From Podarcis filfolensis (lineage: Eukaryota), in the NCBI GenBank assembly GCA_964270895.1, contig OZ185439.1: 64,000 bases of DNA; one strand, given 5' to 3'. Under the pieces are notes generated by a model. That model was not told the origin of the DNA. It saw only the letters and a list, made by a program, of their open reading frames with translations, and ran no database searches. How positions within the stretch are numbered: position 1 is the stretch's first letter; each line of letters begins with the position of its first letter. The translations under genes were made by a program, and so were the position numbers. This document shows positions 19,222 to 40,258 of the stretch, piece after piece.

Positions 19222-19924
19222 ATGAGTAGTAATCTTGGGAAAGAAAAAGATTGTAAGGAGAAGGACCCAAAAGGGTCTTCAGCAAAGGAAAGGGAGAAGG
19301 AGGCCAAGACTTCTGGTGGATTTGGGAAAGAAAGCAAAGAGAGAGAGCTTAAGACCAAAGGGAAAGAAGCCAAAGATGGGAAGAAGGACTCCAGCGGTGC
19401 ACAGCCGGGTGTGGCTTTTTCAGTGGACAATACAATAAAACGACCTAATCCAGCTCCAGGTGCTCGCAAGAAATCCAGCAATGCCGAGGTGATCAAAGAG
19501 CTAAACAAATGTCGGGAAGAAAATTCAGTACGCTTGGACTTGGCCAAGAGGTCGATACACATACTCCCACCATCTGTCAAAGAGTTAACGCAGTTGACGG
19601 AACTTTATTTATATGGAAACAAACTGCAGTCACTACCGTCTGAGGTGGGCTGCCTTGTGAATCTGGTGACACTGGCCCTGAACGAGAACTCACTTACCAG
19701 CCTCCCTGACTCTCTTGATAACTTGAAGCAGCTTCGCATGGTTGATTTACGACACAACAAACTGAGAGAAATTCCTCCAGTGGTGTATAGGCTAAGGTCT
19801 CTCACCACACTTTATCTACGCTTTAATCGTATCACAACTGTGGAAAAGGATATCAAAAACTTGTCGATACTCATCATGCTCAGCATACGGGAGAACAAAA
19901 TCAAGCAACTACCTGAAGAAATTG
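19222..19924 (+). CDS. SHOC2: SHOC2 leucine-rich repeat scaffold protein, coding exon 1 (aa 1-235): Lys/Glu-rich N-terminus, GVAF PP1-binding motif, first LRRs
   Basis: Translates [17 protein letters not shown]...[15 protein letters not shown]...[15 protein letters not shown]...[12 protein letters not shown]. Donor G|gtaaga at 19925. The 703-nt length matches the recalled human c.1-703. Confidence 0.97.
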
Positions 19925-21387
19925 GTAAGAGTGATTTTAAAAATCCTGTACTAAATCTTACTATGTAACAGTGGATTGAATTGTTATCCATGGGCAAGAG
20001 CCACCTTTGCAGAAATGAACTCCTGCTCCCTAGGACCCCCAAATCTGCTCTCTAGTGTCCGCTAATGCTCAATCTGCTGTGCAAGTAATGTGGATGGGCT
20101 TCACCAAATTAATGCATGCCATTTGGCCATTAGATTCCTAAAGCACTGAACCATACCTCATATATTTGTCTGGTTTTCAGCTACTGTCCCACAAATTTTA
20201 TTCCTTCATATTGGACTCCATGAATTAGGCTTAGTTCTTGAGGAAGGAATACAACCATTTATTGGCTCCCAGATACAGTGTTATATATTAAGGATTGTGT
20301 ATTTGTGATGCCTAAGACATAAGTAGTAGTATTGTTTGGGGGTAAAGTCGAGAAAGTTAGAAAGTTAGAAATGCCTTCTTAAGAATTGGGGCACAAACAA
20401 CACTTTAGGAGAAAGCAGTTTTGGTGCTATCTAATTACTAATGCCTGCAATTAATCTTTTCATAAATGTAACACTGAATCATGAATTCACATTTTTTTCA
20501 GGAGTGGAAACTTGCTTAAGTTGCAAAAATGGCATGGCTAGTATTTTAACCAAGAATCTGAGTAAATTTAATATTTTTAAAATAGGTCAAGAGATTCCAT
20601 TATGAATTGCCTATAGAAATTCAATAACTTTCCAACTCCTTTCCTATAAACCGTAATACTGAAAAGGCTATGATCATTTGACAGTACTGTTAGGAGGGAT
20701 GAGGTTTAGGGAATATGTTGGCTGGTCTCTTGAATTAAGACCATATGGGGATAGCATAAAGACCTGAAGAAGTATCATGCAGAGCAAAAATTTCCACATT
20801 TAAACTATGTACATCTTAAACAGTTCCTAAATAACTACGTAACTATATACAAATGTATGCACCAGGATATGTGTGTGATCACCTACTTTGCTTTGTTGCT
20901 GTAATTATTCCACTTCTATTTACTTATCACTGGGGTTTTTTTGTCTCTTGTTTCCCTCTAACCTTACTCCCCTCCATTTCTTTCCACTTGCTGATGTGTA
21001 TATGTGCCTGCCACTTTCGGATTGCAGTTTATTAATTTGTTAGTCTTAAAGTGTTTCAAGATACTTCTATTTTATTTTGTTCAAGAAATTCAGCTTTCTT
21101 TCAGCTGGCCTCTTTCCTTAAAATTCTTTTATTCATTCTATTTTTCTTTTAATAAGTAAACTGGTGGTTCTGATTTAAGACAATGTTATGACACTTAAAT
21201 TTAATTTTAATCCACACAGGCAAGATACATCCCTGCACTCTATCCTGATACAGTGACAAGTAAAGCAGCGTATGCAAACAGGATACACTCCTATGGGATT
21301 TCTATTATTGAAGTCACTCAAAAAATTGCCTGTTCATGCAGTGTATGCTTCTATACAGTTCTTGTAGTTGGAAACAGTTGGAGAGGG

Positions 21388-21670: not shown

Positions 21671-23899
21671 AGAAGGCTGTTTATTGCTGTAGACTCTTCC
21701 TTAGGGCAAGTTACACTCTAAAAACTCATAGAAACCTTGGTGGGGGGGGGTGCCTCCATTTTTGTGGCTGGAGTGAACTTAATATATTCACTTGTTTAGT
21801 AAAACTTTGGAACAAGTATTAGTTTTGCCAACCTTTGCCCACTGCAGCTTCTTTAAGTAAATACAGTGTAATTTTTTTTGCTGCTGAAGGGTATAAGGTG
21901 CACATCTAGTGCAAAATTAAGTAAAAATGGTTAGGTGTTAGGGGATGTTTGATGTGGCAGCAGCATATCTCAGCTTAGGTCATGTTGAATTTGTATAAAG
22001 TGTGTGAACTGATCTGTGGACAATTTAAAGAACAGTTTACTTTAGCTGTTAATCTCTGCCTTTGCGCAGTGATATCAGACTAATCTTTACCACTTTTATT
22101 GGTAGCTGCTTATATTTGTCTTGCTTTGGAACAAGACTTATTGCTGCTGCCCTTTTGACTTGTGTGATACCTTTGAGGAAAGCAATTGGAAATACTGTTC
22201 TCTGCTGTGTCTGTTGGGAGAAGGACTACACAGTGCTTGTGTATTTTTGTATATCCACTGTGGCTCCAGAGAAACCACCAAAGGAGGTTTATTTTTCTCT
22301 TCTCTGAACTGTTTAGTCTGAGGTGTCGCACTGTATTAAAAATGTGAAGTCCTGCCAACAGCTAATGCTACGAATTATGCATTCCTGAAGAAAACATTGG
22401 GGATCCCCTGTTGCCTAAGGTAGATCTAGCTTATTTTCCATATCTCTCTAGGAAATCCTCCATTCCATTGAAGCAAGGGTAAAGAGTGGGATAAAATTCA
22501 AAATTATAGTGAGTCACAGAAGAAGCATGAGAAATATGAAGAAACAAATGGGAGTGTCTCTGACTGAATCCAATGCATTCTTGTAATCCTAGGTTTATCT
22601 TATGCATTCTTTTATAGCTAGTTTGTTGTACATGTTCATTTCTAGAGGCACGCCATACAATTAGTTTTATTTTCACACAAAATAGCTTTATTATTCAATG
22701 CATGCATTCTCTAATAAAACTACTGACTGAAATGGTGACAGGTTTCTCTATTTTTCACAGATATGCACATGCAAGTAGCAAAGCAGGTGAAAGCTGATGC
22801 TTCTAAAATACTTCAATTTGGGGTGGTTTGGGGAAATTGCAGTAAAGGCTGACCTACATATTTTGAACATCCCTGTTGGACAGGTTTTTCAAGTAAGGGG
22901 TGGATGGTGTGTAATGGGAGTTGTTGGTTGCCATGCCCAAGAGATGTAAAGCTTATTTAATTTAATTAAAAGAAATTGTTTTCCGCTCTTCTATAAGATG
23001 AGCGTAACCTGTGCTACCTTCTGAGTTTTTCACAAGACAGCAATAGAATTGTAGATATGAGATATGATTGATGGGCAGTGCTACAGGTAAACCCAGAGCC
23101 AGTAAGACAGCTTGCAGTTGTATATGTTAGCAATGAGAGAAATGAGAATGGGTTTCTAAGAGCTTAGTGCACTCCTGATCAGAATACAAAAGATAATTGC
23201 TCTTACATGGGTAGCTGGCAGGAAAAGAAAAATGAAGGTTCATTGTTTTTGGTATACTCTACTGGCACTTTAAAAATCAACCAGGGAATAGAAATTCCAG
23301 TACAGTACTTACTATAAGCTTAGTAATATTTTTCAATGCCAGAATTTTAAAAAAATACTTCAAGTTTTTAAATTCTTAGGAGTTATAACAATATAATTTA
23401 GGTTACCTTTTTATGTAGGTAGAGAGTCTAGAAGAGGATTAATAAACACTGTTGCTAGCAGACATACACGTATGTCATTGACTGCTCTGTACTGACTTAG
23501 TTTGACTCATTTGTTTGTTACTAAAATTTTGTTTAATGCAATCAGTATGCTGGATAATGTGTGCAGGTCTCATAATACTCCTCAGTGGGCTAGCACAACT
23601 TAAGAAAAATGGAGGGGAGATGATTTCAGAGAAGAGGTCAGAAGACAAATGCTAACTGAAGCAAAAATCTAGAATTGCTAATATTCATAAGTTCCCTTTC
23701 CTTATGTGCCCAGGGAAAGCTCTCTATCCATTCCCTTTGTCATCTGCTGCAGGATTTATCACAATGTAAAGGGTTTTTAGAATTTTCAACCTGGTTACGG
23801 AGAGAGCTAGACTGTGCAGCCGGTCAGGAGAGTTGCATATCATCCTTGCAGTCTCAAATATTTTCCACCAAGTTAATTGTGGCAGGAAGAATACATCTG

Positions 23900-23929
23900 T
23901 ACATACATACATACATACATACATACATA
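23900..23929. repeat. (ATAC)n microsatellite
   Basis: Directly visible; ~30 bp from the LINE target site. Confidence 0.95.
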
Positions 23930-23974
23930 GTTCACAAAAAGTGAAGGTAGCCATGATGGCTGTAAGAAAAATTA

Positions 23975-26900
23975 CTTACTTATTCAAACCTTTATTAGGC
24001 ATTATACAAATAAAACGATAAAAGAAAAAGTAACATATAAAAGCCTTGAGATATATACAGAAAGGCAGCAGTTGGCTACATACATATATATATATATACA
24101 TATAAAATCAGTGGTTTTCCTTGTTAACCTGCTCCTTGGAGGACTGCTACCAAAAACTCGGCTACCCCCGCCGTTACCCTTTGGTCAACGTCGGATAGGC
24201 AGAATCCCACACATTCACCTTGTTGGGGCTCCAAACCACCCAAAAGAGGGGACAGCACGCGTTGACGGGGCGTACTGTACAATGGGCACTGAAAGAGAAT
24301 GTGCTCTACCGTGTCCGGGACATTCATAAAACATCTGCAGAATCTCTTGTTTCTAGGGATGTTTTGATATCTTCCCCTGACAAATGCTGAGGGAAAAACA
24401 TTCAAACGGGCCAGCATAAAAGCCCTACGTTGGGCTGGAATTATTAATTTGGTGACGTAATTGGCTCTGCTATCTAAGATATTTAAATCATAGAATATGG
24501 GCGAGCAAATTTTGTTTACAGCTGTCATAATATTTTGCCTCTCGACATCCTTTAGTCTAGTTAGGATATTATGGAAAATGTATTGCTCATTAGAATTGTA
24601 CAGGGGCTCCAGCTCGATGCCTAAAGATTCAATCTTTTTTTCGAGGTGCTGATACCATCTTGATTTGTAGGAGTCTTTGAGCAAATCAGCGAGCAGACTT
24701 GATGGAGGGCAGCGAAAATGGCAGCGTAACCAGTACTTTATTGAGGTGGACCAGGCCCAATATTCCATTGTGTGTATGCCTATTTCTGCACACATTGTTT
24801 CATATTTGATCACAGCTGGGAGTCCAAGAATACGTCTCAGAAAGCTGGAGTGAATCTTTTTTAAATCACTATTATATGCTTGGACCCATAGCGGGATTCC
24901 ATAGAATATCTGGGATTGCACTTTTGTTTGGAATATCTGATTGGCCGCAGGAATAAATTGATTGCCTTTCTGATAATAAAAACGGGCAACTGCTGATGAG
25001 GTGCACTTTGCCTGTTTTATGGCATTTGTGCGATGATTTGCCCACCCTAAATTGCTCTGGAATAAGATTCCCAGATACCTATAGATTTTCACTTGTTGGA
25101 TTTCCTGCCCTCTTATTTTCCATTTCTCTAATTTCCAACCATTCGAGAAGACCAAAATTTTTGTCTTCTCGTAATTTATAGAGAGCTTGTTACATTCGCT
25201 GTAAAGGATCAGAGAAGATATAAGACGTTTCAGACCCAAGCTCGTTAATGATAGTAGGACAGCATCGTCTGCGTATAATAACAGAGAAACTGGTTTCTGA
25301 TTAAGTTTAGGGGCATGTGATTCTATTTTTTGAAGGTGATCTGGCAAGTCTGATAAAAATAAATTAAATAGGAAGGGGGCAAGAATACACCCTTGTTTTA
25401 CCCCTTTCGAGTTTGGGATGTCTGATGAAAGGTGACCTTTGGTGTTAAGTTTGACTTGACAGATATTGGAAGAGTATAAATTTTTTATTAGGATCAATAA
25501 GCGCTGATCAATTTTTAATTCTGCGAGTTTCCTCCACAGCTTTGGGCGGTCAATTGAGTCAAATGCACCACGAAAATCTACAAAAGCAGCAAATATCTTA
25601 GATTGCCTTTGAGATCTGTATTTTTCAACCAAATGCATAAGTATAAGGCAGTGGTCTAATGTAGAGCAACCTTTGGAGAAACCTATTTGTTCTTTCCCTG
25701 GTAAATTTAGATTTTTCATCCAGGTAAGGAGTTTAGATAAAAGGTGCTTAGCGTAGATTTTCCCTATCACTGATAATAGGCTTATCGGTCTATAATTCCT
25801 TGGTTCTTTTGGGTCGCCATTTTTAAAAATTGGGATAATTATTGATCTTAACCATATCTCAGGTATGATCCCATATTTATCTATGAGAGTAAACAATTGA
25901 GCTAAGGGTTCTGCCCACCAATCTATATAGGTCTTAAATAATTCTATTGGTAGACCGTCTGGCCCAGGAGATTTCCCCGATTTGAAATTTTTAACTATCT
26001 CTCTAATTTCCTCTTCTTCTACCCTTGGCCACTCCTGGAGTTTATTGATTTTATTTTTAGTGGTTTCATTTCCTTTAAGTTCACTGTGTAGATTGTTAAA
26101 TACAGATGTAAAATATTGGGACCATTTGGATTCTGCAATTGGTGGTAGAGTTAGTTGATTTTCGGCTTTCAATCCTCCGTACACTAGGTTCCAGAACGCT
26201 TTGTTATTTTTACTCTGAATTGAGTCGAGTAATTGTAGCCATTTTTGGGTTGCATATTTCTGTTTCTTTTCGGCCAGAATGTAATGATATTTTCTTTTTT
26301 CATCAAGATAAGAGGGCTCTAGTTTAGTGCGATTATTTTTAAATGTTTGGCGCAGTTTTCTTTTTAGCTGGAAACATTCATCATCAAACCAAGGGCTAGC
26401 GCTATGTTTAAGTACCCAAACTTTAGGTGGAGTACTAAGTTCTACGAACATTTGGAAGATTTCATTATAAATTTTCGGAATATCGCTGTAGGAATTAGTG
26501 GTCTTTAAGTTGGATAATACTTGTTTTCTCAGGTTGGCTGTAAGTTTTTGCCCCACTACTGCACTCATTTCCTGGGACCATTTTAATTGGGTCATTTGTT
26601 TGTATTGAGAGGGTTCTATAATATTGTGCTTGGTTATTTTGGTTTCATCCTTTAAGTTAATAGACAACAATAATGGCTGATGGTCGCTTTCAGTACGCGT
26701 TCCGATTTTGAGGTCCATAATCGAATTTATAATATTATAAGGGACAAGAATATAGTCGATGACACTGCATCCTCGGGGGGAGAAGTATGTAAACTCCCCG
26801 CTTCTATCGCCTTTTGTTGAACCGTTCACAATCTGCAAATTAAAGTTGTTACATAATTCAAGTAGGCGTAAGCCTTCGTTGTTTACAGCCCTATCTCTGG

Positions 26901-27396
26901 AGAATCGTCCTATTTTCAGGGCATGTGCGATATCATTGTCAGTATTCCAATTTAGTTTGCTACATAGTTGTTCATTGTTGGTTCCCACTCTGGCATTAAA
27001 ATCACCTGCTATTATCAATGAGGCATTTGGGTATTTAGCGGTCAAATTTTCTATATAAAAGGTTAGTTGTGACCAATTTTCACTGTTGCTGTTGTTTTTG
27101 GATGGGGGGATATAGACATTTACAAGTAGCAAAGTATCTTCTTTTTGGGTTAAAAGTAGGGCTTGTGCAAGTGGCAAGCATTTTTCTAGCTGCTTGATTT
27201 CAAACCCTAAGTTGTCTTTGATCATACAACAGAACCCTGCTTTCGGCCGGCCCTTCGTGTTTGTTTTCAATGCGGGTTTCGTATAGGAGGAGAATCCATT
27301 GATTTTAATATCTCTAGTTGACCATGTTTCTTGTAGAAGTATTAATTCAAAATCTTTAAAGAAGTTCATTAGGTCTGGGTCTCCGTCTTTGTTTCC
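23975..27396 (-). mobile_element. Young, slightly 5'-truncated non-LTR retrotransposon (APE-RT-CCHC; RTE-X-like clade suspected), antisense in SHOC2 intron 2
   Basis: 13-bp direct repeat GTAAGAAAAATTA at 23962-23974 and 27397-27409. One uninterrupted ORF, then a 149-nt 3' UTR ending AATAAAGGTTTGAATAAGTAAGTAA on the - strand. Confidence 0.95.
24124..27369 (-). CDS. LINE ORF2 protein, 1081 aa: apurinic endonuclease, reverse transcriptase and C-terminal CCHC zinc knuckle
   Basis: APE motifs LQETW, NVY, GDFNAR, IDY, SDH. RT motifs KSPGPDG, YRPISLL, QIGF, FVDFRGAFDS, GVKQGC-LAP-LF, LLYADD, YLG. C-terminal CRC-x7-H-x4-C. The frame stays open upstream of the Met to the 5' junction (GNKDGDPDL). Confidence 0.95.
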   Translation of the reverse strand: MNFFKDFELILLQETWSTRDIKINGFSSYTKPALKTNTKGRPKAGFCCMIKDNLGFEIKQLEKCLPLAQALLLTQKEDTLLLVNVYIPPSKNNSNSENWSQLTFYIENLTAKYPNASLIIAGDFNARVGTNNEQLCSKLNWNTDNDIAHALKIGRFSRDRAVNNEGLRLLELCNNFNLQIVNGSTKGDRSGEFTYFSPRGCSVIDYILVPYNIINSIMDLKIGTRTESDHQPLLLSINLKDETKITKHNIIEPSQYKQMTQLKWSQEMSAVVGQKLTANLRKQVLSNLKTTNSYSDIPKIYNEIFQMFVELSTPPKVWVLKHSASPWFDDECFQLKRKLRQTFKNNRTKLEPSYLDEKRKYHYILAEKKQKYATQKWLQLLDSIQSKNNKAFWNLVYGGLKAENQLTLPPIAESKWSQYFTSVFNNLHSELKGNETTKNKINKLQEWPRVEEEEIREIVKNFKSGKSPGPDGLPIELFKTYIDWWAEPLAQLFTLIDKYGIIPEIWLRSIIIPIFKNGDPKEPRNYRPISLLSVIGKIYAKHLLSKLLTWMKNLNLPGKEQIGFSKGCSTLDHCLILMHLVEKYRSQRQSKIFAAFVDFRGAFDSIDRPKLWRKLAELKIDQRLLILIKNLYSSNICQVKLNTKGHLSSDIPNSKGVKQGCILAPFLFNLFLSDLPDHLQKIESHAPKLNQKPVSLLLYADDAVLLSLTSLGLKRLISSLILYSECNKLSINYEKTKILVFSNGWKLEKWKIRGQEIQQVKIYRYLGILFQSNLGWANHRTNAIKQAKCTSSAVARFYYQKGNQFIPAANQIFQTKVQSQIFYGIPLWVQAYNSDLKKIHSSFLRRILGLPAVIKYETMCAEIGIHTMEYWAWSTSIKYWLRCHFRCPPSSLLADLLKDSYKSRWYQHLEKKIESLGIELEPLYNSNEQYIFHNILTRLKDVERQNIMTAVNKICSPIFYDLNILDSRANYVTKLIIPAQRRAFMLARLNVFPSAFVRGRYQNIPRNKRFCRCFMNVPDTVEHILFQCPLYSTPRQRVLSPLLGGLEPQQGECVGFCLSDVDQRVTAGVAEFLVAVLQGAG

Positions 27397-28541
27397 GTAA
27401 GAAAAATTATAAAATCTGCATCATGGCAACACCTTTACTAGGCCAACCAAAGTGTCTCAAAGTAGCGTGCAAGCTTTTGCGTTCTGGAAGATGCTCCATC
27501 AGGCTAGATTGTAAACAAAATGGGATGGACAGGAAACAGGCTGACTCTATAAAAGTCTCCGTTTAGTCATAGTCTTATGATGGAACATAGGAGTGGCAGA
27601 CCTTCAGATGGGGCTCTGCTAGGTGATATGCAGGTTTCAGGTTGCATCTAAGGCTGCTGGAAAGAAAATAGGATGATTAATCCCCCTATCTTTGAAAAGA
27701 TAAAGTTGAGCAGTTACTTGCATCCATCTCCATCCTTAGGTGAAACACAAAGGTTTCATAGTAGGTGGAAAATGGGAATTAAAAGCAATCAGTTTGTTTT
27801 TATATAAGCTAAACTGGAGATTCGGTTCAAGTGAAGAAAAAAACGAACATTACTGTTTTCCACGTATCTGTGCGTCTCAATGAGATGTGAGATTCCTCCC
27901 TCCTTAAATGAAAGCATGACAGTATTAAGTAGCCTATATATAGGAGAAAGTGTGTGTGTTTTAATGAGGGAAAATGTATAAATAAGACAGGTTTTTCATC
28001 TTCATTGTGAGAAATGGTAGATTTGCTGTTTCTGCTAGAGTTCTACTTATACAGAATCCATATCTGCATCTGTTTCTATAACATTTTAAAGAAAAGCACT
28101 CGTATCAGTTGTTTTATCAGAAGTAATTAGGTTCATGGGACTTACTTCCAGGTAAGTAAGCAAAGAATTCCAGCCTCAAATTCCTGCCTTAAATTAGAAT
28201 TAATCAGTTCTTGCCAGGTTTTTAATTTAGGGAAAACTGTCCTTATAAATACCATGACAGCAAGATAATTTTAGTACTGTGAAAAGTACTAGGTATAAGA
28301 GCAGCCACGTTGGTGCAAAACAGAAAAAGAAATTTAAAATGCAGATTCTTCTATTGGGAAGAATACCAGCACCATACAATTACTATTCTTATTCCTACTT
28401 TACTACATTACATTGAGAAGAGAAATTGTGAAATTGTGTGGGTTGGGATTAGAGGTTGAAACTTGACAATGCCATGCATGCCTTAAAGGTGGCCTTTTGC
28501 GTCTGCACTGTTTAGTCCTGGGCAGAACAATGACTAATTAA

Positions 28542-28709
<168 letters not shown>

Positions 28710-33469: not shown

Positions 33470-34702
33470 TACTAACTTTTGTGAGTTTATTTACAAGACT
33501 GTGATACTTGATAGACAAAAAATTGTCTGTGTCTTCCTTTTTGCATAGCAGAGAACAGAGCACATAAGATTAGATTGCTTTGTGTGATCTAGTTTTCCAT
33601 TGGCAAAGTAGGTAGCCAGAACTCGCTTATGTCTGTTTGCAAACTTCCCTAGAATCGTGATTAGTATGTTTTATGAGTGTGAAGCTTATGTTTCCAGGAA
33701 AAGGGAGGGATGTCATTCTGCCCAAAGGTGCTGCAGAGTGTGATGGTGGCATGCAAATTTACACTTTAAGCTTCTGTGGCAATCATTCTTCTTATTGGTC
33801 TGAGAAATAGCTAAGCTTGGTAATAAAAATGGATATGGACAAAGGTGTCATAAAAAGCCAGTATTAATTTTTTTTATAATCATGACTATAAATATATTTC
33901 TGCAGTAACAAAGTTTTTATTCTTCACCTGTGAATTCTGTTTAAACTGCCAATCCTAAGAAATTTATCTCCCACACCTAATAAGAGCACCTTGTAGCAAA
34001 AAACATTTAACTGTAATTTTGCATCTCATGAAGTTTTATAGACTGACAAGTGTTGGGGCTTTCTGTTGACGAAATGGATAGCTTGCCCTGGCAATATTGA
34101 TCTTATGCTCAGTGCACCAAGAGAGATGTATCAATTTGCAATATAGTCTCATGGGTTAAGTTCAGAAAGCATTAGGGGATGGCAGCAGGTTTTTCATTAA
34201 TTATCCGCTGGCACATGCAGCTCACATGCAAGGTTTTTATGTCCTTAATTGTATTGCTTTTGACGTCTGCTAATTTCCCCTTCCTCTGTTCTTGCAGAAA
34301 TGCTTACCCTTGTAATCTGAAATGTGTAAAGTGGTCTAAAGTACTAGAGTGATGAGTGGCCAGTAATGTTTAAAAAGAAACAAACAGAAAAACTTAGATG
34401 TATGCTTTGAGAGAATTGCTGGGCAGCTAGAGATGAAAGCAAAGCTGAGTAGTGTAAATTGATTACACCAAAATGGGACATAGCTGAAATTCTGAATCCT
34501 TCACCAGTGTTTGCATCTATACTTGGGAAATCCTTTGAAAATATGCTGCTCAAAATATGCAGAGATATTATTGTGGAAAGAATGTGTTTACTGAAAAATA
34601 AAAACTCTAGGAATTGGTTCTTTTCCAAGAAAATGCAACCAGTGGGAGTCCCCTTCTCCCAGCTTCTAAAGCAAATCTCTCTTAACCCTCTTTTGTTTTT
34701 AG

Positions 34703-34833
34703 GAAACCTGTCCAGTCTGAAAAGCCTCGGGCTGAGGTATAACCGGCTCTCAGCAATACCCAGGTCTCTAGCACAGTGCAGTAAACTTGATGAACTGAAT
34801 TTGGAGAACAACATGATTTCTGCTTTACCAGAG
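34703..34833 (+). CDS. SHOC2: SHOC2 coding exon 3 (131 nt)
   Basis: ttttgtttttag|GAAACCTG...CCAGAG|gtgagg; encodes (G)[43 protein letters not shown]. Confidence 0.97.
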
Positions 34834-37800
34834 GTGAGGCATTCTACAGTTTTTGTATGATTGCAGCTTAATGTTGTTTAAATGTTGCTCTAAAGCACTG
34901 GAACCAGCATTAGTTTTATTGAAGACAAATGCTCTGGAAATGGAAGGCTGCTGAAATTTGCCAAATTGGATGTAAACTATTAGCATTAGCACTAATTGAA
35001 TGGGAATGAATGGATATTGCTTGAAGAAGTTGCTGCTGTGAGAAAGTTGCCTGGAAGCTTTTAAGAACAAAGCTGAATTGCCCCTCCCAAGCGCATTATG
35101 AAAGTTACTCAAGTGTAATTAAATATACAAAGGAGACTGACAGCAAAACAGATTGCTTTATTATAAGATAAGTTTGGCTCCCAATCCAAAAACTCTTTTA
35201 ACAAATAAAAATGCTTTATTCAGAAGTGCTAGTCTGTGTATAAATTGTAATTGTTGCTGAAAAGAGCCACTTGCATGTTAGTGTAGTGGGGTAATCCATT
35301 AAAGCAAGTCTCTCTGGCAGCAGAAGAAAGAAAACATTTGTAAAGAAAACTGCAGAATTGCAAAATATACCAAGCTCATGATGATGCAATGCCTAATAAA
35401 CATTAGATCTTAAAAGACTAGTTTGGGAGAGGCAGCTGTCCAACAGTATTCATAAATAGTAAGTACTTTGTTTCTTTTCGAAGCAGTACATTCATTAGCC
35501 AGCCTCTTCTCTGATCCCTAAAAAAATAATAATCAGTGTGTTTGAAAATGGCTAAAAAATGTAATATCTATGTGGCTGAGTTTATTATGACAGCCTTCAG
35601 CATCAAGCTTTTGCAGATTTCAATATTCTTTGAAAAGTCGGTGGTGCCAAAGCTCCATTGCAATCTTTGGCATGAAGAACTCTCTTAAATATGATTAATA
35701 TGAAATACCTTATGAGTTTAGGGCAACATGCAGACTTTTGCTCACTCGCTGTGCTCTCCTCAAGTCTGCTCTGGAGGTACCCCAGCACTCTGGAACAGAT
35801 TTTGGGAGGGTGGGCTTGGGGCTGCAGGAGAAAGAAGAAGAAGGGGAAGTCCTCTTGTACCAGTAAAAATATGTTCTGCTGGAGGGTGGTTACTGCTGGA
35901 TATTTTGAGAGTTCACTGATGGAAATTCCTATAACTAGTACTTGATAGCATCTTGCTCTCATTTTTAAAATGATTAATGTTGTGCAAGTTTACCAGTATT
36001 CCATCATTACAGGCATCATGATGCAATATTAATTTCATCAGAAAGAAAGTTTGGCATAAGAAACCAGAAGAGGAAACTTTTAGTGATATCCCATGGTGTT
36101 ACTCTGTTGATGGAAGGCATCCCTTAGTGGAAGAGGGGAAGAGGCAATGTTCTGCAATTTCCTCCCCACCCCTTTGTAGCCACCCATGGCTCCCTATTTT
36201 GTTTCGTTGGGTTTCCATCCTGCATAAAATTGGGCCCAGCGGGCTGAGCTTGTGTCGCGTTTCCAAAAAATGGTCTCCCTTCCCCAATCTATTAATGGAT
36301 ATTTTCCATCAATCAATCTCTTTATTATGGTCAATGACCAGTAATTTCCTTTCATTGGTGGAACATTACTGTTCGATACTACTCTTTGTAATTTCTGAAT
36401 TACAAAGTAGGAATATGACACCATTTTAGTAAATAAAGGAAACCAATCCTGTCTTCAGGTGCTTTTCTTTTTCATATATAACAGCTTGCCTGGTGAATGA
36501 TATAATCTGTTTGAATCTGTTTTGTGTTTGTTTCAATCGTTACTTACAGTTATTTGTCAGAAGCGTAAACTTAAAAAATATTGAGGGTGCAGTTTAAAGC
36601 CCCAGACTTGTTAATCCTAAAAGTACGTACCTTATCTGAGCGCACAGTGTAATGGAACAAAAATTTACAGTTGCCTCATTCTCCCTGCAACAGCTGATGT
36701 CCCCCAAAAGTCCTCTTTGGGTGACACAGGCAGGTTCCTGAATACTGTGGCCTGGAGGGTGTGTGTGGAGAGGATGGGAAACTTGGTTTTCATGAACTTG
36801 CTTAAGCTAACTCCCCTTAAATCCAGCTCAATTTGGAGCAATTCCTGTGTACCTCAGCTGTCCTCTGTTCCCCATTCCACATTGTTCAGGGTATCCTTGG
36901 GCACAAATGGCTGCAGGGTGTGAAGATATAGGAAGCGTTCTTCCCGTGAAATTCCTTTTTTAGGATCCAAGCTGTTTTCTTTAAAGTAAGGCTGTCACCC
37001 AGTTAAAGATAGTTTAGTCTATTGCTTCGGCATAAATTTACATTTAAATAAAGCAATAATTCCTAAGAAACATGCATGCTTCTATTTCATGTATGGGCAT
37101 GTTACAGTGGACACCATCTTAGAACTTCCAAGATGGTGCCTGCTGCCACAGTTGTGGTAAGTTCTTACATTAAAAGTACAAGCAGTTTGCTTAAATCTTG
37201 CCAATTCAATTGGGGAAAGGGTTCTTTCTTAGTTGACTGAAAGTTTTTCATCTATTAGTCTAACAGATTACTTGACTAAAAGTTGCAACCCCACTTAAAA
37301 GTACTCTAGTTTTAGACAGCAATGGATGCAGCAACAGCTGTTTGGATGGAGAATTGATTGTGCCTATCAAATGAAACCATAGCACAGGTCTTATGGAAGC
37401 ACTGGTTTCCACAAAAATGAGATAAGCAATGCTGTGTTATATAATGCCTGTTACATGAGGATGCAACAATAAATGGTAAGGTGACTATAAGTTAAATCTC
37501 TGGCACAACCTCAGCCATGAATTACATGGCTCTCCCTTTCCATAGGCTGAGTTTGTTACAAAGTGCGAAAGTACTATAATTGGCTGAGCTATGTAGACAT
37601 TACCTCACTACTTGGAATTAATTCTAAGCTTTTCATGTTGCCCAGAGTTTATTTTCAGCCATTACTTTGGGGAAATAATTTACCGGTGTAATGAGTGGGG
37701 TTTTTTAAATGACATGCTTATCTTTTTTAAACACATGTGAATCAGCAATTACAGCACTGTATGTACAAGTTCTGTGCAAGCAGATACTTCCTCTTCCCAT

Positions 37801-39841: not shown

Positions 39842-40258
39842 ATGGACCTGCATTGGCTCCCAGTACGTTTCCGAGCACAATTCAAAGTGTTGGTGCTGAC
39901 CTTTAAAGCCCTAAACGGCCTCGGTCCTGTATACCTGAAGGAGCGTCTCCACCCCCATCGTTCAGCCCGGACACTGAGATCCAGCTCTGAGGGCCTTCTG
40001 GTGGTTCCCTCATTGCGAGAAGTGAGGTTACAGGGAAGCAGACAGAAGGCCTTCTCAGTAGTGGCGCCCGCCCTGTGGAACGCCCTCCCATCAGATGTCA
40101 AAGATATAAACAACTACCTGACATTCAGAAGACATTTGAAGGCAGCCCTGTTCAGGGAAGTTTTTAATATTTAACACTGCATTGTTTTTAACACTTGATT
40201 GGGAGCCGCCCAGAGTGGCTGGGGAAACTCAGCCAGATGTGCGGAGTATAAATAATAA

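Follow-up and report, generated by a model that had tools for sequence, protein, structure and literature searches.

Several clades of long interspersed nuclear elements (LINEs) have been listed for the lizard Anolis, namely CR1, L2, L1, RTE1, R4, RTE-BovB, Vingi and RTEX, and the last of these (also written RTE-X) has been reported in Anolis carolinensis (PMC7561263). In green algae, every RTEX family tabulated in PMC3747384 (Table 3) terminates with a microsatellite repeat. Vingi elements, which are compact and carry a single open reading frame (ORF), have been reported from Anolis, crocodilians and hedgehogs. Compact active LINEs of this size class, such as Vingi-1 from Anolis and RTE-1 from opossum, are under development as gene-insertion tools (PMC13708176), so that naturally intact LINE families are of practical interest. 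Here we describe a LINE insertion in a 64,000-nt stretch of contig OZ185439.1 from Podarcis filfolensis (assembly GCA_964270895.1); this whole stretch is called the window. We concluded that the element is very probably a very recent, slightly 5′-truncated copy of a still-propagating LINE family of wall lizards (Podarcis and relatives), of the type that carries an apurinic/apyrimidinic endonuclease (APE). The event is an ordinary kind of retrotransposon insertion. It points to a compact LINE family of wall lizards that is active now or was so very recently, and that has a full-length ORF opening straight into the endonuclease.

The LINE insert proper lies at 23975–27396 on the minus strand; it is 3,422 bp long, has 38% G+C and is 5′-truncated. 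On the plus strand, the 13-mer GTAAGAAAAATTA was read at 23962–23974 and again at 27397–27409, and both copies touch the element directly. Logan contigs of four public runs (X1, X2, X7 and X13) were aligned to window positions 22962–28409. In three runs representing three organisms (X1, X2 and X7), a contig joined 23961 to 27397, with exactly 13 letters fitting either side. The joint skips 3,435 bases, that is, the 3,422 bases of the insert plus 13. Because an empty site with a single 13-mer exists, the 13-bp duplication is genuine rather than a repeat that arose by chance; the perfect target site duplication (TSD) claimed in an earlier, sequence-only reading of this stretch was thus borne out in three public runs.

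Contig depths at the empty site differed among the runs. In X2 and X7, which come from related species, the empty-site contigs had depths of 12.8 (flanks 12.5) and 24.6 (flanks 22.9), respectively. In X1, another sample bearing the same species label as the window, the empty-site contig had a depth of 7.8 against flanks of 14.5. This contig carried a 1-base deletion at 27475 together with 27510T>G and 27561G>A, the last two being common to X2 and X7, and a second, reference-like contig of X1 overlapped 27475. Because of the half-depth empty contig and the second contig at 27475, X1 looks heterozygous for the insertion. The suggestion that the element might be a presence/absence polymorphism was therefore supported by single-13-mer contigs at half depth in X1 and full depth in X2 and X7. 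The fourth organism, X13, also lacks the LINE, as one of its contigs skips 4,108 bases from 23510 to 27619. Besides the element, the X13 skip spans about 450 bp on its left and 210 bp on its right, and small indels occur at 23257–23472; either this lineage has undergone a deletion of its own here, or X13 carries a divergent haplotype of the intron. In sum, the insertion is very young and not fixed. As such it offers a genotypable presence/absence marker that could be used in Podarcis population genetics and introgression studies.

The ORF list contained one minus-strand ORF for the element (24124–27369, 1081 aa), with its first in-frame ATG at 27369. The frame is open for 9 further codons (GNKDGDPDL) to the junction at 27396, which gives an open frame at 24124–27396 of 1,090 sense codons plus stop, in agreement with the intact frame of roughly 1090 codons noted from the sequence alone. 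The name ‘ORF2’ used for it there presumes an ORF1. Pfam matches on the window ORF were RVT_1 at aa 520–768 (E 6e-32), Exo_endo_phos_2 (E 1e-11) and Exo_endo_phos (E 1.5e-4); no RNase H and no zf-RVT match was found. The AP-endonuclease domain (26650–27396, minus strand), delimited by Pfam, by alignment to the relatives P0001 and P0127 and by invariant alignment columns, is without its first 9 codons, MLSWNIAGW. Reading of the sequence located, all on the minus strand, the endonuclease motifs LLQETW (catalytic E, 27322–27339), VYIPP (Y, 27103–27123), GDFNAR (D/N, 26989–27006), IDY (D, 26746–26766) and SDH (D-H, 26674–26691). When the endonuclease profile was compared with the Protein Data Bank (PDB), it matched L1 endonuclease (L1-EN) structures at 1e-17 to 1e-19 and TRAS1-EN, of the R1 clade, at just 0.02.

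The reverse-transcriptase (RT) domain spans 25066–25812 on the minus strand, as judged from RVT_1 and from alignment to the RT of human L1 ORF2p (E 1e-29). It contains NYRPISLL (25774–25797), FVDFRGAFDS (25555–25590), GVKQGCILAP (25375–25404) and the active site YADD (25258–25278), again by reading on the minus strand. The sequence-only reading had all APE and RT catalytic motifs present. This held for the E, Y, D/N, D and D-H residues of the endonuclease and for YADD; the first catalytic Asn (the N of MLSWN in P0001 and P0127) falls within the 9 absent codons. Near the C-terminus lies a Cys/His motif, CRCFMNVPDTVEHILFQC (24286–24339, minus strand), which is kept in P0002, P0003 and the Anolis protein P0137. 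Its spacing had been given as C-x-C-x7-H-x4-C and must be corrected to C-x-C-x9-H-x4-C.

In LINE sense, the frame is followed by a 149-nt 3′ untranslated region (UTR; 23975–24123) that holds a (TA/TACA)n run (24077–24104) and an AATAAA (23991–23996), after which it terminates ...GGTTTGAATAAGTAAG; the 3′ terminal sequence of the LINE reads ...CCTAATAAAGGTTTGAATAAGTAAG. The tail proper (23975–23984), AATAAGTAAG in LINE sense and ending ...GAATAAGTAAG, is a TAAG-type microsatellite of short non-poly(A) repeats. A repeat tail had been given as (AAGT)n; the repeat type is indeed present, limited to about 2.5 TAAG units. The 3 bases beyond the tail, TAA, are target-derived and keep the repeat register. 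In run X7, loose contig ends showed that other family copies match on through 23972–23974, that is, through the target TAA, which implies that longer family tails do contain ...TAAG-TAA. By analogy, the short non-poly(A) tail suggests that the 3′ end is recognised in a ‘stringent’ manner, with tail slippage, and slippage on tail repeats has been described for UnaL2 (review PMC3747384). The predicted fold of the 3′ UTR was no more stable than shuffled sequence (z = −0.32), and we do not claim a conserved stem-loop. A search of the window found no second copy of the LINE and no partner short interspersed element with the same 3′ end, and Rfam gave no match in 19–35 kb of the window. A perfect (TACA)7.5 microsatellite lies at 23900–23929, 32 bp upstream of the insertion site, and all Logan contigs break there.

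We sought protein relatives by a word search of a 5.8-billion-cluster protein collection with the window ORF. This search returned a 13-protein cluster at ≥90% identity, among which were five distinct intact ORFs of 1,099 aa from Logan assemblies. The 1,099-aa ORFs open with MLSWNIAGW and then continue into the GNKDGDPDLMNFF... of the window copy (GNKDGD). Two of them, P0127 and P0128, were 99.5% identical to the window ORF, with 5 amino acid differences, 3 of which are private to the window copy; P0131 was 98% identical, and six Podarcis muralis UniRef proteins were 97–98% identical. A second subfamily (P0001, P0132), 94.4% identical to the window ORF, is intact too, so that intact ORFs occur in both subfamilies, which are about 94.5% alike. 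Compared with a full-length element, the window copy therefore lacks the 5′ UTR and the first 9 codons (27 nt) of the ORF, and the proposal that truncation fell a few codons into the endonuclease, removing the usual WN motif, proved accurate. Contigs of the family in all four runs continue beyond 27396, where the reverse complement ATGCTGTCCTGGAATATTGCAGGGTGG encodes MLSWNIAGW, and one X1 family contig extends 464 further letters past that point. From these 464 extra letters, the full-length element is at least ~3.9 kb long and the window copy is at most ~88% of it. Four family members (P0123, P0125, P0129 and P0130) are exactly 1,081 aa long and begin at the same internal Met (MNFFKD or MNFLKD); either many copies were cut near one point, or gene callers chose the internal ATG.

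The window copy differed from high-depth X1 family contigs at 13 positions over ~3,240 aligned bases (0.4%). Summed contig depth was 650–2,080 over the element and ~14 in the flanks, and it climbed toward the 3′ end; this depth is not a copy number, and the climb is the profile expected of a family of 5′-truncated copies. That the family was active very recently is supported jointly by the perfect TSDs, the divergence of 0.4%, the absence of fixation and the existence of several intact full-length ORFs that are nearly identical; on the evidence of these ORFs it is probably still active. On both counts, a very young insertion and a source family that is probably active, we came to the same view as the sequence-only reading, which had also called for a search for near-identical full-length copies; the intact 1,099-aa ORFs at 99.5% identity are such copies. 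The window copy itself is most likely inert, dead on arrival despite its long open frame, because its 5′ UTR, promoter and start codon are missing, as is the first catalytic Asn of the endonuclease. Its intact frame reflects youth, not selection. The locus combines the features of an APE-type LINE insertion: APE and RT domains with YxDD, a TSD with an empty site, and a multicopy, 5′-truncated family with a defined 3′ end.

We propose that the copy would have arisen by target-primed reverse transcription (TPRT), driven by the family's own endonuclease. The cDNA strand would be the plus strand of the insert, so the priming nick is placed on the plus strand, at ...AAATTA^TAAAAT..., immediately after the final base of the 13-mer; its context, ...GAAAAATTA^TAAAATC..., is AT-rich. 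The freed TTA-3′ end may then have paired with UAA of the (UAAG)n tail of the RNA and primed cDNA synthesis. Read in LINE sense, the tail ...TAAGTAAG is continued by the target TAA, such that the repeat register would run into the target. Reverse transcription would have halted, or the template been lost, 27 nt past the start codon, and a second nick on the opposite strand, 13 nt away, would have led to the duplication. Priming through the TAA microhomology had been suggested before and is consistent with the tail register and the X7 contigs, the match being 3 nt only.

The RT domain was placed with two trees: a first tree of 114 word-search matches built in IQ-TREE under LG+C20, and a reduced tree of 55 rows under LG+G4, on which approximately unbiased (AU) tests were run. 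Three features of these trees weigh against the placement that we favor below: the sequences are unlabelled, and groups were named after the tree had been seen, from motifs and Pfam architecture; the 114-row mixture-model tree puts the family in an open polytomy with two other groups; and the 55-row grouping of the family with those taken as RTE-like is weak, with a value of 85 in the Shimodaira–Hasegawa-like approximate likelihood ratio test (SH-aLRT). In the 114-row tree the family (window, P0127, P0001, P0002 and P0003) is a starred clade. One of its polytomy partners, ‘tier 1’, consists of proteins of ~1,000–1,230 aa with a GxxQGC motif and a C-terminal Cys-Cys-His-Cys (CCHC) motif. The other is a starred 45-row clade (98*) that includes all RNase-H-bearing proteins but one, all those of PQG[ST] type and the only match named ‘jockey’. 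Outside the polytomy are a starred L1-like clade (100*, with a CCHC of CWRxC type) flanked by zf-RVT proteins, and a starred clade, ‘tier 2’, whose N-termini are of the SWNVRTL...SETR type and which has no CCHC. Tier 2 and the proteins P0018 and P0032 are taken here as RTE-like from their motifs.

The 55-row tree resolved three superclades: L1-like plus zf-RVT proteins (100*), I-like plus PQGS proteins (99*), and the family with tier 1, tier 2 and P0018/P0032. The Anolis protein P0137 (1,068 aa) fell inside the family's clade (100*); the representative of its cluster, P0004, was 36% identical to the window ORF. AU tests rejected joining the family to the I-like RNase-H-bearing group (p 0.0099), to the PQGS group (p 0.0037) or to P0087/P0104, which are I-like without RNase H (p 2e-5). 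Not rejected were a position as sister to the whole I plus Jockey supergroup (p 0.43), a union with the L1-like plus zf-RVT group (p 0.19) and a union with tier 2 and P0018/32 (p 0.47). On these sequences, the family is best read as an APE LINE lineage that branched early and falls outside both the I and the Jockey superfamilies. A CR1, L2 or Jockey placement was discarded on the PQGS test, the starred branch between and the presence of GVKQGC in place of PQG[ST], which agrees with the earlier exclusion of L2 and CR1. Once the clades disfavored by the trees and AU tests are removed from the Anolis list, those of the RTE group are the remaining candidates. Our proposal that the family represents an RTE-like lineage of early branching, with RTE-X as the most suitable name at hand, is one we hold to be evenly poised between right and wrong.

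Several points also weigh against a very recent insertion from a still-propagating family. The read evidence consists of Logan contigs, not raw reads, and it was from linked variants and contig depths that X1 was judged heterozygous. On its shorter side, the empty-site joint offers just 25 unique letters before the contig-breaking (TACA)n at 23900–23929. The species of X1 is taken from its run label, and its empty haplotype could be introgressed; activity of the family is argued from intact, near-identical ORFs; and a 3-nt microhomology, which would occur by chance in about 1/64 of insertions, is weak evidence for the priming step. We considered it unlikely that the insertion is fixed in the window's species and that the X1 empty allele entered by hybridisation with, or introgression from, a related species, or else reflects wrong labelling of the sample. 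The X1 empty contig does share the linked variants 27510T>G and 27561G>A with the full-depth-empty organisms X2 and X7, and the identity of the sampled organisms is known from labels alone. However, an ancestral haplotype common to sister species is also predicted by an unfixed young insertion, X1 carries private flank variants elsewhere (e.g., 23455C>T and 27968G>A, seen in X1 only), and either way some chromosomes in nature are without the insertion. Far less credible still is that the empty site is a precise secondary deletion of an older insertion through its 13-bp repeats, or an artefact of collapsed contigs. Such repeats could in principle drive a deletion, and contigs do break at the nearby (TACA)n, so that one side of the joint has just 25 unique letters; yet the same joint was recovered independently in three runs from three organisms at single-copy depth, the fourth organism lacks the element plus some flank (23510 to 27619), and the 99.5% identity to intact relatives and perfect TSDs fit a young insertion. 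A reading of the ORF as an exapted host gene was rejected, since the copy has TSDs, belongs to a multicopy family and is polymorphic. We therefore retain the very recent, unfixed insertion.

The same weighing applies to the name of the family. That it is a deep offshoot of L1/Tx1, or a lineage without a current name, in place of RTE-X, is in our judgment doubtful. Human L1 ORF2p was the best solved-structure match for the RT (1e-29, compared with 1e-20 for R2), and the residue numbering of the RT domain is almost equal in the two proteins; the endonuclease profile matched L1-EN at the values given above, a C-terminal CCHC is an L1/Tx1 feature, and both the sister relation to the L1-like plus zf-RVT group (AU p 0.19) and the polytomy leave room for such a position. 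A best match to L1 carries little weight, however, because the PDB holds no RTE-type structure. Moreover, the L1-like clade (100*), alone or with zf-RVT proteins, excludes the family, whose tail is TAAG-type without poly(A), whose Cys spacing is C-x-C compared with C-x3-C in the L1-like matches, whose ORF is ~200 aa shorter than theirs, and which gave no zf-RVT match in Pfam. With the family outside the L1-like clade and an I-like placement rejected, clustering with L1, Tx1 or I families, named by the sequence-only reading as evidence against RTE-X, was not seen. Improbable, too, is membership of the Vingi clade, a branch of the I superfamily that has no RNase H and is sister of Ingi (PMC13708176, PMC5786205). 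The resemblance is real in that Vingi elements carry a single ORF of ~1,000 aa without RNase H and occur in reptiles (PMC3708506, PMC5753468, PMC13708176), and likewise the window ORF has no RNase H match in Pfam and the full-length 1,099-aa ORF starts directly with the endonuclease. Among named relatives, the closest is a protein family of Anolis at 36% identity, the C-x-C spacing is common to the I-like matches P0040 and P0087, and ant proteins are 31% identical over the endonuclease, Vingi having been reported from insects (a locust and, reportedly, Heliconius). Nevertheless, if the unlabelled groups represent the I and Jockey superfamilies, AU tests reject all three such placements (I-like 0.0099, PQGS 0.0037, P0087/P0104 2e-5), the starred I-like plus PQGS clade excludes the family in both trees (98*, 99*), and the family RT has GVKQGC and not the PQG[ST] of that group. 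Because Vingi is sister of Ingi in the I superfamily, rejection of an I-like position disfavors it, with the limit that the trees hold unlabelled sequences only and no labelled Vingi or Ingi among them. Finally, it is rather unlikely, by a slightly smaller measure than for Vingi, that the lizard family, its Anolis relatives and two unlabelled ENA proteins (~40% identity) constitute a distinct, unnamed deep APE LINE lineage between the RTE-like and I/Jockey groups, marked by C-x-C-x9-H-x4-C, that may have reached the Podarcis lineage recently.

The host gene is SHOC2, as the matches of exons to SHOC-2 structures indicate, which upholds the earlier view that the insertion lies inside a signalling gene. 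A plus-strand ORF at 19222–19968 matches human SHOC2 residues 1–236 (PDB 7upi, E 5e-162), and the first coding exon is accordingly placed at 19222–19929. A later exon encoding residues 280–327 lies at ~34699–34842, again by match to a SHOC-2 structure. Between these two exons, a leucine-rich-repeat pattern scan gave a single match, at 28569–28700 (plus strand), which would be the next SHOC2 exon (residues ~237–279, assigned by eye; boundaries approximate). The LINE is antisense in the 8.6-kb intron that follows the first coding exon; the distance is 4.0 kb to that exon and ~1.2 kb to the following one, which is the closer of the two. Nothing unusual is implied for SHOC2. On the strand that is sense for SHOC2, the insert has seven AATAAA/ATTAAA hexamers, starting at 24009, 24952, 24975, 25358, 25363, 26839 and 26995. 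Elsewhere in the window, a 110-aa plus-strand ORF at 39842–40174 (MDLHWLPVRFRAQFKVLVLTFKALNGLGPVYL...) resembles the conserved C-terminal portion of an L2-type LINE ORF2, or a repeat derived from L2; it is probably an old repeat fragment within a SHOC2 intron. A 125-aa minus-strand ORF at 2229–2606 contains ...PCPSWLIK... and ...FQSGFRPAHG..., motifs typical of L2/CR1-type LINEs in the stretch immediately before the RT and leading into it; it is probably a degraded LINE fragment.

Beyond Podarcis, the word search found no ORF of ≥595 aa between 42% (P0002, from ENA) and 94% identity to the window ORF. A search with the endonuclease only added an Anolis protein at 32% and ant proteins at 31–36%. 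Neither search gave any sign of a near-identical copy in a distant taxon, and hence the check for horizontal transfer proposed in the sequence-only reading returned no evidence of a recent event. The gap between 42% and 94% means that vertical descent is not demonstrated either, and it leaves room for a horizontal arrival or for long ‘stealth’ persistence. The tier 2 LINE family (P0020–P0030, P0241–P0355) has proteins ~1,065 aa long with the SWNVRTL...SETR type of N-terminus. Its endonuclease is 53–77% identical among teleosts (Alosa, Cyprinus, notothenioids), amphioxus, tapeworms (Spirometra, Sparganum), shrimp and many metagenome contigs, and similarity of this kind between phyla would be compatible with aquatic animals having exchanged the family horizontally more than once. 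The names of the tier 2 endonuclease matches were uninformative, and the BovB-linked ‘craniofacial development protein 2’ did not turn up in the word search. Clade names came neither from the ESM Atlas nor from look-ups of protein clusters, which yielded organism names for the cluster of the window ORF and for the Anolis cluster.

Comparison with named LINE systems shows where the wall-lizard family stands. Human L1 ORF2p (PDB 8sxt, 8c8j, 1vyb) was the closest solved structure for the RT and the endonuclease alike. The family shares with it the order of APE, RT and C-terminal Cys/His motif, an RT domain whose residue numbering is almost equal, and the logic of TPRT at an AT-rich nick site; unlike L1, it lies outside the L1-like clade (100*), has no poly(A), has an ORF ~175 aa shorter and has another Cys spacing. 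Like Vingi-1_ACar and other Vingi elements, it is compact, with a single ORF of ~1,000–1,100 aa, no RNase H, a lizard host and dispersed sites (Kojima et al. 2011, as cited in PMC5753468, PMC3708506 and PMC13708176), whereas the AU rejection of I-like and Jockey-like placements and the RT motif QGC, as opposed to PQG[ST], separate the two. Squamate Bov-B/RTE-1 elements resemble it in the compact APE plus RT plan, the stringent-type 3′ end, the short tail repeats and TPRT with TSDs. In contrast, the family does not cluster with tier 2 or with P0018/P0032, which are RTE-like by look, but forms its own starred clade with Anolis P0137, and it has a CCHC motif where these unlabelled stand-ins, through which the comparison is made, have none. 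To our knowledge, neither the C-x-C-x9-H-x4-C motif nor the LLQETW-type start of the endonuclease is associated with classical RTE/BovB. The family departs from RTE-X in size, at ≥3.9 kb against the 4.9-kb mean of bivalve RTE-X (PMC10294476). It is like RTE-X in its large ORF with N-terminal AP endonuclease and RT and no RNase H, and in its short 3′ UTR with a non-poly(A) microsatellite end and frequent 5′ truncation. In the 55-row tree the family groups, weakly, with the sequences that we took as RTE-like, a union that the AU test did not reject (p 0.47).

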